Shown one piece after another: positions 14,544 through 54,642 of a stretch of 64,000 nucleotides of DNA. Every line of letters begins with the position of its first letter. Positions within the stretch are counted from its first letter, which is position 1. The translations under genes were made by a program, and so were the position numbers. A model generated the notes under the pieces. It worked only from the letters and a program-made list of their open reading frames with translations. It did not search any database and was not told the DNA's origin. The stretch lies in the sequence record OP953026.1; one strand, given 5' to 3'.

Positions 14544-14574
14544 GGAGCCCTTCGGGGCTCCTTTTATTTTTTTT
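14544..14574 (+). terminator. Intrinsic terminator after phuZ
   Basis: GGAGCCC-TTCG-GGGCTCC plus T-run. Confidence 0.9.
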
Positions 14575-16565: not shown

Positions 16566-16583
16566 TCTTTTTTTTTATTTTTT

Positions 16584-17393
<810 letters not shown>

Positions 17394-49292: not shown

Positions 49293-49350
49293 ACGTGGAG
49301 GACGTGAGGTTTGGGGAGCACTGCTCCCCTTACCGATCGTTGATTTTTTT

Positions 49351-51879: not shown

Positions 51880-52023
51880 ATGCAAGTACGAATTGAGGTA
51901 ATCAATAGTGAGGGCAATCTGGATATCGAAGAACGGGTTGATATCCGCCCAATGAAGGGGTTAACGGCCTGGATGGTCGCTCTAGCTATCAAAGGTCTTG
52001 TAGCTAGCTTTGCACGTAAGTAA
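51880..52023 (+). CDS. 47-aa protein with a hydrophobic C-terminal helix
   Basis: TAAGGAG RBS; MQVRIEVINSEGNLDIEERVDIRPMKGLTAWMVALAIKGLVASFARK*; ends at the terminator 52029-52075. Confidence 0.7.
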   Translation: MQVRIEVINSEGNLDIEERVDIRPMKGLTAWMVALAIKGLVASFARK

Positions 52024-52073
52024 GGCGACATAAACCCCTCTCCACATGGAGAGGGGCCTGTCTTTATTTTTTT

Positions 52074-52589
52074 TTATTTAGTTAACGGCTTGTTTAATTC
52101 ATTTAACTGGTTATTGTTATTAACAGCTTCATTATGGGTAATATTTCTACATAATTCAATTATGTATTCTACCTCAGAATAAGCTAATTCAAAGAATTCA
52201 GTTAATGACATATTAGATAAGCTACCTACTTTATACTTGAAGAAATCTCTAGTCAGTCTCCTTCTCAACCCACCTTCGATAAAGTCCTCTTTAGGATTTA
52301 CCTTATTTAACCACATGGGTCCGTTTTCTGGTGAACCGATATCGTAATCAAGTAGATATGCTTCTCTTGTTAAACGTGCTGCTGTAGACGGTCTTACTGC
52401 CCCTACTGTCGATAATAGTCTATCTAAGTGTGTATCATCTTCAGTTAACTTATCATAACCAAAGTTTGGATGTAGGATGTGACCACTATCTTCCTTGAAA
52501 GTGGCCTCAAGACGACTATATCTCAGATCATTAACTACACCATCCGGTTTGACTTCGAGGCCGCCAAAGTAAAAAAAGTTGACAGCATG
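52074..52589 (-). CDS. -1 frame extension of gp77 (T-like part of a G/GT chaperone pair)
   Basis: 171 open codons; first in-frame ATG only at codon 92 (52316); slippery T TTT TTT at 52571-52577. Confidence 0.7.
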   Translation of the reverse strand, partial: HAVNFFYFGGLEVKPDGVVNDLRYSRLEATFKEDSGHILHPNFGYDKLTEDDTHLDRLLSTVGAVRPSTAARLTREAYLLDYDIGSPENGPMWLNKVNPKEDFIEGGLRRRLTRDFFKYKVGSLSNMSLTEFFELAYSEVEYIIELCRNITHNEAVNNNNQLNELNKPLTK

Positions 52590-54136
52590 TCAATAGGGAT
52601 TAAGTGTGGGAAACGTTCTTTAAATTTAGTAGCAGCAGGTGACTCACATACTGGACAATTCCAACTTGTAATTGCAATCATTCCAATTAGTTGTGAATCA
52701 ATGAAGTTACTCACCGCATTAATAAAGCGGTCATTATATTCCGGTGTGGATAGAATATTAGTTAAGAACTTTTCAATAGTTTCACGATTAGTGGTTGCAG
52801 TACGAATATTGTCTTCAGAACTTTCACCATCGTCATCTTCACGTACTTTAATTTCTTTAACAAAATGTGAGAACTGACGGGCAATAGAGATCTTTTGTAA
52901 ACGTGCAATATACTGAGAACGTTGCGGACCATCGACTGGTTCATTAAAACTACCTTGAGTCATATCGATAATTGAGTTAATCCAACTATCACCAGACTCT
53001 CGGCGATCAGCAATTGTACACATCTCAAGAACAACACCAACGTCACCAAACATTTCAGTTACTTGAGTTTCAATACGGAATCCTTCTTTATAAGTCTTAA
53101 GATCAGATTCAGTACATGCATTAAACTTACGTGCAATATATTTCTTTTGTTCTTCTGAGAATGCCAGTAGATCATATTGAACAAGCGTTGACATATTAAG
53201 TTTCGCTGTTTCAATATGGTTACATGTATTGGCATCTGCAATGCATGGATAACTATAATTAAATCCATCTGGATACATAGTCGCCGCTAGTGCGTGATGC
53301 AAGAACGGCTCATCAGCTACTGAGATAACATGCTCTAGATCAGTTGGGGTGTTGAACTTATAGTTGGATTGAATAACACATGCAAGTGCTAAACTACTAA
53401 CCATGTTAAGTAACACAGCTGCCATGTTTGAGAACAGCATACCTTTTGATTCAGCGCCTAGCCGGATCTTTAATTGTGCTAGACGTGCTTGTAGGGCAGC
53501 TACTTCAGTACCAGTAGGTGCACGTAGTTTTACCCAAATACCTGAATGAGGTAGGAAAGTATCATATGGCGTACCGATGTTAGCTTTACGTGTTAGGAAA
53601 ACTAGAGTTTCATCATCGGTCATTTTACGACCATTGGTATTAAATACAGGTCGGCCAGGTCGAATGATCTTTTCACCATAAGGAATTTCACTAGACCATT
53701 CAGAACCTTCTCGGGCAGTTGCACCGATTGGTGCATCTTCAACAATAGAGTGAGCTAAGCCTTCCAGAATAGCAGCTGTCCACTTTACACCGTCACTAGT
53801 GTCATCTACTTTATTATCAGCAAATGCTTTAAATAGTTCTTTATTGTGATCCAGGAAATTATAAACAGTCTGGGGATTCTCACGTAGTAAAGTAAGAATG
53901 CTAGCACTATCTTTAATAGCCGGTTCAGAAGCATCCCGGATATTTCCAGTTTTAGCATTACGTGGAATACGTAGTTTAATTTCTTTTTGATCAGGAACGA
54001 AAGGTGGAGTTTCCACCTCGTCATTATTTTCAATACTAGAGTCAGGATCGTGTTGCGCATTGATCTCATCAATTTGATCTAGTAAATTCTCTTCTGGAGT
54101 ATCATCGTACTCATTATCGAAGTCAGCAGTAGCCAT
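52535..54136 (-). CDS. Conserved protein gp77-like; probable tail/baseplate assembly chaperone
   Basis: 533 aa; LRAPTG, CIAD..C and CPVC motifs resemble T4 gp26/gp51-type chaperones. Confidence 0.65.
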   Translation of the reverse strand: MATADFDNEYDDTPEENLLDQIDEINAQHDPDSSIENNDEVETPPFVPDQKEIKLRIPRNAKTGNIRDASEPAIKDSASILTLLRENPQTVYNFLDHNKELFKAFADNKVDDTSDGVKWTAAILEGLAHSIVEDAPIGATAREGSEWSSEIPYGEKIIRPGRPVFNTNGRKMTDDETLVFLTRKANIGTPYDTFLPHSGIWVKLRAPTGTEVAALQARLAQLKIRLGAESKGMLFSNMAAVLLNMVSSLALACVIQSNYKFNTPTDLEHVISVADEPFLHHALAATMYPDGFNYSYPCIADANTCNHIETAKLNMSTLVQYDLLAFSEEQKKYIARKFNACTESDLKTYKEGFRIETQVTEMFGDVGVVLEMCTIADRRESGDSWINSIIDMTQGSFNEPVDGPQRSQYIARLQKISIARQFSHFVKEIKVREDDDGESSEDNIRTATTNRETIEKFLTNILSTPEYNDRFINAVSNFIDSQLIGMIAITSWNCPVCESPAATKFKERFPHLIPIDMLSTFFTLAASKSNRMV

Positions 54137-54147
54137 TTAAAACTCCA

Positions 54148-54642
54148 TTATTGTTGAATTAGTTTTTCGTCCCAACCAGCTTCTCGAAGAGTGCCGATCA
54201 TCGCTAGGATTACACCATCAATACCGCGTTCAATAGCACCTTCAATACCAGTGTATTTAGTAACAAGTTCACTGATGAGTTTTAGTTCATCTTCATTATT
54301 TGCTGGACCAGCCTTACCTTGATGTTGTGCATATAGGACACTGATAATTTTAGTTAGTCGATTAAGGTCAGCAATAACTGTTTGTAGGTTCTTTTGGAAT
54401 CCAGTAGGATCAGATAACGTCGGAATGATTTCATTGATCTTATTGATAACTGGATTAATGAATACTTCAGTTTGTAGAATACGTTTACCTACGGAACCTG
54501 CTAGTACATTGACAACATCCCAACCATCACGGTTAAGAATATGATCAGCTGCGGCAGCTGATGCTCCAACAGCACGTTCAAATAGACGTAGAGTCTTTTC
54601 CTGTTCTTTAGTTAGAGTTGGTTCTTTAGCTTTATTTGACAT
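54148..54642 (-). CDS. Hypothetical helical protein (gp78-like)
   Basis: 164 aa, GGAG RBS. Confidence 0.7.
   Translation of the reverse strand: MSNKAKEPTLTKEQEKTLRLFERAVGASAAAADHILNRDGWDVVNVLAGSVGKRILQTEVFINPVINKINEIIPTLSDPTGFQKNLQTVIADLNRLTKIISVLYAQHQGKAGPANNEDELKLISELVTKYTGIEGAIERGIDGVILAMIGTLREAGWDEKLIQQ

Follow-up and report, generated by a model that had tools for sequence, protein, structure and literature searches.

How is the small open reading frame downstream of phiKZ gene 77 translated, when its conserved protein sequence extends far upstream of any start codon of its own? We studied this in a window of 64,000 nucleotides from record OP953026.1, which is a phiKZ-type phage. The gp77 region is 98.6% identical to Pseudomonas phage phiKZ and 100% identical to several phiKZ-like isolates, and the gp77 of the window is near-identical to PHIKZ077 (27 base differences over 2,063 bases). 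The initial annotation proposed that a run of U near the end of gp77 is a -1 frameshift site giving products of 533 and about 687 residues, stimulated by a stem and possibly a pseudoknot, and that the pair resembles the G/GT tail chaperones, with an extension resembling their T part. All of its sequence observations were found to be correct. Its interpretation is partly supported: the shift site and the two-frame layout are supported and are more general than was proposed, whereas the RNA structure and the likeness to tail chaperones are not.

The U run and the two reading frames

All features described here are on the minus strand of the window unless stated otherwise. gp77 occupies 54136..52535 and consists of 533 codons plus TAG. 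Seven T occupy 52577-52571, where the zero frame reads ACT TTT TTT ACT, so that the run is an in-phase U_UUU_UUU heptamer over the two Phe codons 521-522, 11 codons before the stop. The -1 frame has a TGA at 52592-52590, four codons before the run, and then stays open for 171 codons (52074..52589, followed through to the stop at 52076-52074). From the run onward, 165 codons would be added to gp77 residues 1-522, and the product sizes are therefore 533 residues and 522 + 165 = 687 residues. The first ATG, GTG or TTG in the -1 frame is the ATG at 52316, codon 92, which is the start of the 80-codon ORF annotated in RefSeq as PHIKZ076.4 (52074..52316). This ORF is only the C-terminal half of the extension. 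The start-less part between the gp77 stop and this ATG (52317..52534) is left in RefSeq phiKZ as 218 unannotated bases.

A T7 run by itself is not unusual in this AT-rich DNA, with 23 matches in the window against 34 expected. What exceeds chance is the conservation of the whole arrangement in relatives. The run is also not a sequencing or assembly error, nor polymorphic in length, since all 47 close phiKZ-like genomes match the 101 bases around it with no insertion or deletion.

Conservation of the layout in related phages

A tblastn search with the -1 frame piece alone (164 residues, a single frame) hit 47 phiKZ-like records, in all of which the extension protein is at least 99% identical, and also 21 records of distant Pseudomonas jumbo phages at 32-41% identity. 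The latter alignments begin at query residue 1-10, far upstream of any start codon. We then read the junction in 11 annotated Pseudomonas phages, in 12 distant phages of Xanthomonas, Erwinia, Ralstonia, Serratia, Bacillus, Salmonella, Vibrio, Aeromonas and Klebsiella, plus a marine phage from a sea squirt, in about a dozen uncultivated viral contigs, and in two contigs from sequencing-run assemblies. Homologs of gp77 are found in 226 phage records. The loci read were counted as 34 non-redundant loci (lineages), and their gp77 homologs form 33 clusters at 90% identity, 24 at 60% and 13 at 40%. The result is uniform. At the homologous two codons (Phe-Phe, or Phe-Leu in two lineages) there is a run of T, which is T5 in 6 loci, T6 in 12, T7 in 13 and T8 in 3. 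The small downstream gene is in the -1 frame in 34 of 34, and that frame is open back across the run in 34 of 34, with extensions of 151-181 codons counted from the run. That homologs keep the run and have no conserved start of their own is the pattern that had been named beforehand as a test of the proposal. The zero frame stops 8-44 codons after the run and the -1 frame is closed 2-46 codons before it. Taken together, the only place where all lineages allow entry into the -1 frame is a window of about ten codons that contains the run.

The run is selected as nucleotides and not only as Phe-Phe, and we treat it as a conserved signal and not as damage. Most of these genes prefer TTC for Phe, and outside the site the TTT/TTC counts are 0/14 in Xoo-sp14, 2/19 in PhiPA3, 2/14 in RSF1 and 1/17 in L032. 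The site nevertheless keeps TTT, usually preceded by a codon ending in T, and runs of six or more T occur nowhere else in the ORF in 28 of 29 lineages.

The start-less stretch is conserved as protein. Its translation aligns across all lineages, and length changes between the run and the downstream domain never break the frame. The nearly identical phiKZ-like genomes offer too few differences in this part (2) to be useful. We therefore used moderately diverged pairs, in which the differences over the equivalent segments, beyond the zero-frame stop and before any start, fall 23, 12 and 43 on codon positions 1, 2 and 3 of the -1 frame; as the pairs are not independent, the significance of this third-position excess is indicative only. 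In the overlap zone (52535..52570), which holds the last 11 zero-frame codons of gp77 and the first codons of the extension, both frames look constrained. The zero frame is better conserved at codons 1-3 after the run, while the -1 frame is better conserved at codons 5-6, where Pro and Glu have shares of 0.90 and 1.00 against 0.48 and 0.86 for the commonest residues of the zero frame.

The available starts are not conserved. The first canonical start in the -1 frame lies anywhere from codon 8 to codon 87 of the extension, at non-homologous positions; it falls before the predicted helical domain in 21 lineages, inside it in 9, and after the invariant Tyr of the conserved domain in 4, phiKZ among them. 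The Ea35-70 record had to be annotated with a CTG start. A word-indexed protein search with the extension found one fragment only, and a search for related loci with the extension alone found only a phiKZ-like contig, while in a 27-sequence alignment no stretch was conserved enough to seed such a search. An exhaustive HMMER search of 1.84 billion representative proteins found 39 relatives of the extension, all of 45-175 residues and with N-termini placed anywhere from query residue 6 to 82, which is what gene callers produce when there is no real start. None is fused in frame to a larger protein. The two-frame layout is therefore maintained and not accidental, which argues that both the short and the long product matter.

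Mechanism of the proposed frame change

We consider a programmed -1 ribosomal frameshift, conserved across the family, to be the best explanation, with a probability of roughly 0.7. In this view, ribosomes translating gp77 reach the two Phe codons in the run of U, and in a fraction of passages the Phe-tRNA, or both tRNAs, re-pairs one base back and translation continues in the -1 frame for 165 codons. Two proteins would result: gp77 proper, of 533 residues and ending in a short helix, and a form of about 687 residues in which the last 11 residues are replaced by a linker of roughly 45 residues and a compact helical domain of about 120 residues. The signal, the frames, their conservation and the protein-coding nature of the start-less stretch are shown by our analysis, whereas that the shift is made by the ribosome, how often it happens, and that a trans-frame protein is produced and both products are used are inferred from sequence alone. 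Tandem slippage is possible where the full U_UUU_UUN heptamer is present (18 of 34 lineages, including the window). In the other 16 the heptamer is imperfect (N_UUU_UUY with T5-T6 runs, and in one case the run sits in the other phase), and there only one Phe-tRNA can re-pair perfectly.

No conserved stimulatory element was found. The two complementary segments named in the initial annotation do exist (52564-52553 and 52511-52501), but they are not part of the minimum-free-energy fold, and the region folds no better than shuffled sequence (z = -0.13 and -1.14). RNAalifold on 20 aligned junctions finds no shared structure (-0.24 kcal/mol), and the proposed stem pairs in 48.5% of cells against 45.7% in shuffles. 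Folding of the 70 bases 3' of the run in each lineage gives z-scores that scatter from -3.65 to +1.88 with no common pattern; lineage-specific elements are not excluded, as Psa21 and D6 fold well. The stem and pseudoknot are thus rejected as a shared stimulator. An Rfam scan of the region gave nothing relevant, and no shared purine-rich, Shine-Dalgarno-like motif was seen in the 20 bases upstream of the run in 27 lineages, although this was by inspection only and not by a statistical scan.

The same long protein would be obtained by transcriptional slippage, in which the phage RNA polymerase adds one U to a fraction of the transcripts at the T run, and the comparative data do not separate the two. 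The site is a homopolymer, with T7-T8 in 16 of 34 lineages, no ribosomal stimulator was found, and these phages transcribe with their own multisubunit polymerases. We nevertheless regard this as unlikely, because the run is only 5 or 6 T in 18 of 34 lineages, shorter than the runs of about 8-9 or more usually needed for appreciable polymerase slippage, and because the phase of the run relative to the codons is conserved in 33 of 34 lineages, which matters to a ribosome but not to a polymerase. Similarly unlikely is that the downstream protein is a separate gene, started at a non-canonical codon or by re-initiation coupled to termination of gp77, with the T run kept only because gp77 needs Phe-Phe. 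It is true that all genome records annotate two genes, that 201phi2-1 has a TTG overlapping the stop of its gp77 homolog, that the PHROG 12109 profile matching the extension is 147 positions long, and that in 21 of 34 lineages a canonical start precedes the helical domain, so that a free small protein could also be made there. However, no start of any standard kind precedes the conserved domain in 13 lineages, phiKZ included, the start positions are scattered, and the -1 frame is conserved as protein upstream of the zero-frame stop. The small gene also remains in the -1 frame in 34 of 34 lineages despite many length changes. A need for the amino acids does not explain the use of TTT against codon bias or the preceding codon ending in T, and the second codon is Leu in two lineages while the run is kept.

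The reading that the stretch after gp77 is a decaying remnant or an assembly artefact, with only PHIKZ076.4 or nothing expressed, is very improbable. In its favor are only the RefSeq annotation of the 80-codon ORF and one relative, RVTF4, which carries one extra frame break in its extension. It is contradicted by the identity among the 47 close records, the full length conserved in distant lineages, the coding signature, and a confident helical domain model that begins upstream of the ATG at 52316. A further possibility, which the evidence does not rule out but which we consider doubtful, is that the shift is not a passive low-level slip but an obligatory recoding event, older than the diversification of the family, that fixes the ratio of two forms of the gp77 protein. 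Because no RNA stimulator is conserved, its efficiency would be set by the conserved nascent peptide just before the run or by phage factors that bind host ribosomes during infection. It would then be the first recoding event tied to the core gene set of nucleus-forming phages, and a stimulator-less or protein-tuned frameshift in bacteria.

Protein parts, gene context and known systems

gp77 is Chimalliviridae core gene cg18 (phiKZ gp077, Goslar gp081, RAY gp267), listed as a hypothetical protein in Table S3 of Prichard et al. 2023 (PMC10299810), and is one of the roughly 70 core genes shared by nucleus-forming jumbo phages, a group studied intensively and used in phage therapy. The part of that core-gene table we examined (part 2 of supplementary file 1, cg1-cg58) pairs no small downstream ORF with cg18. 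The main text of the paper and a 2025 review of these phages do not contain the word frameshift, and no mention of recoding at this gene was found in the literature that could be searched (subscription-only papers excluded), including a Goslar virion structure and a transposon essentiality screen. In none of the roughly two dozen annotated phage records we read is the locus marked as recoded. What is new here is the gene and the family-wide context, while the proposed shift site itself is of a classical -1 type. If the frameshift is real, a conserved domain has been cut short, given an arbitrary start or, in phiKZ, left partly as apparent spacer. The family would have a conserved recoding event outside the classical tail-chaperone locus, in a block of replication and transcription genes, and functional work on cg18 (localisation, interaction partners, structures, essentiality screens) would have to reckon with two protein forms. 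The lineages also give a clean natural series of proposed U-run shift sites (T5 to T8, several third-codon variants, hosts from Pseudomonas to Bacillus) with no obvious RNA stimulator.

When compared to the G/GT pair of lambda-like and many other tailed phages, the locus as proposed here shares a -1 shift close to the 3' end of the upstream ORF, a downstream ORF with no dependable start, two products with a common N-terminal body of which the longer carries an added domain, and conservation far beyond the point where sequence similarity fades. The pair is not located between the tail tube and tape-measure genes, however, as its neighbors in phiKZ are gp74 (RNA polymerase subunit), gp75 (helicase), gp78, gp79 (head protein) and gp80 (RNA polymerase subunit). 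Neither part matches any tail-chaperone family, the upstream protein is large, with four conserved Cys, and the slippery run consists of U only. The comparison therefore holds as an analogy of layout and not as membership. In phage T7 gene 10A/10B, a late -1 shift at Phe codons in a U-rich stretch adds a C-terminal extension to a minor share of the capsid protein, and no simple hairpin is known to lie immediately 3' of the site; there the protein is different, the extension is much shorter, the feature belongs to one phage group rather than a whole family, and none of our searches found homology. Bacterial dnaX tau/gamma and IS3-family orfA-orfB share with the proposed site -1 tandem slippage on a homopolymeric heptamer in a bacterial translation system that sets a ratio of two proteins from one message. 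Those sites depend on an upstream Shine-Dalgarno-like element and/or a 3' hairpin or pseudoknot, neither of which is conserved here, and in dnaX the shift shortens the protein while here it would lengthen it.

gp77 corresponds to PHROG 4585 and the extension to PHROG 12109, but searches of Pfam, NCBIfam and PDB by sequence, and of AlphaFold models by Foldseek against PDB and BFVD, gave no informative match for either. All searches, alignments and models used single-frame pieces that end at the run. The gp77 model is of low confidence (mean pLDDT 59.7), so the fold test for gp77 itself is weak. Four of its Cys (C298, C305, C494, C497) are nearly invariant, which suggests metal binding, although this is an inference. 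The extension models well (mean pLDDT 83.8), with a low-confidence linker of about 45 residues and then a helical domain ending in a long helix; PHIKZ076.4 starts after the invariant Tyr of the conserved domain. The search of viral models with the extension returned only small uncharacterized proteins of other jumbo phages, Goslar included, and no tail chaperone. The annotations 'baseplate hub assembly protein', 'ZipA-like' and 'metallophosphoesterase', carried by some homologs or neighbors, were not reproduced by any search.

In RefSeq phiKZ, PHIKZ078, PHIKZ077 and PHIKZ076.4 lie on one strand and are followed by convergent small ORFs. The small upstream gene gp78 (54148..54642), for which no family match was found in the same family searches, accompanies the gp77 homolog in the annotated relatives that were retrieved. 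A terminator-like G+C-rich hairpin (52035..52056, no strand assigned) lies just after the stop of the extension and is the likely end of the gp78-gp77-extension transcription unit.

Irregular and annotated relatives of the extension

Among the relatives, the extension ORF downstream of the gp77 homolog is interrupted only in Pseudomonas phage RVTF4 (PQ015378.1), in which there is one additional frame break inside the extension and the reading then continues in another frame. This could be due to a sequencing error or to real decay. In Erwinia phage Ea35-70 (locus L019), the downstream gene, a CDS starting at 2685, is annotated with a CTG start because no ATG, GTG or TTG is available before extension codon 68, which shows that annotators met the same problem. 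Also, a 96-residue "hypothetical protein, partial [Klebsiella pneumoniae]" encoded on a 288-base contig is 90% identical to the start-less part of the extension, and it is probably phage DNA in a bacterial assembly.

Features around the U run

A six-pair hairpin with a three-base loop (52579-52593, minus strand) ends one base before the U run, giving a weak terminator-like shape. A similar palindrome is found in pEa_SNUABM_54, but most lineages do not have it. When close relatives were compared over 52000-54200, their lengths were found to differ by plus or minus one base. The difference is not at the U run, and in PA7 it is not anywhere in 52074-54136; it probably lies in the A run just after the extension's stop (52066-52075). 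Other runs of seven or more T exist in the window, for example at 49344-49350, 16568-16585 and 14567-14574 (all plus strand), and one of them lies near the junction of the RNA polymerase subunit gene and the helicase gene.

gp77, gp78 and their record annotations

In gp77 (52535-54136, minus strand), four Cys residues at positions 298, 305, 494 and 497 are nearly invariant across 27 homologs, with the last two forming a C-x-x-C pair about 25 residues before the proposed shift site, and this may be a metal site. Some records carry functional annotations for the counterparts of these genes, namely "metallophosphoesterase" for the gp78 counterpart of Halocynthia phage JM-2012 (locus L047, 353-757), and "ZipA-like cell division protein" and "baseplate hub assembly protein" for the gp77 counterparts of LAh10 (L046, 694-2289) and AgentSmith (L021, 922-2625), respectively. 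These annotations were not reproduced: Pfam found nothing for the JM-2012 gp78 counterpart or the AgentSmith gp77 counterpart, the LAh10 protein itself being left out of the scan. A small gp78-like gene (54148-54642, minus strand, in the window) precedes the gp77 homolog in every annotated relative fetched, so the conserved unit is a trio. This gene is not in the core-gene table.
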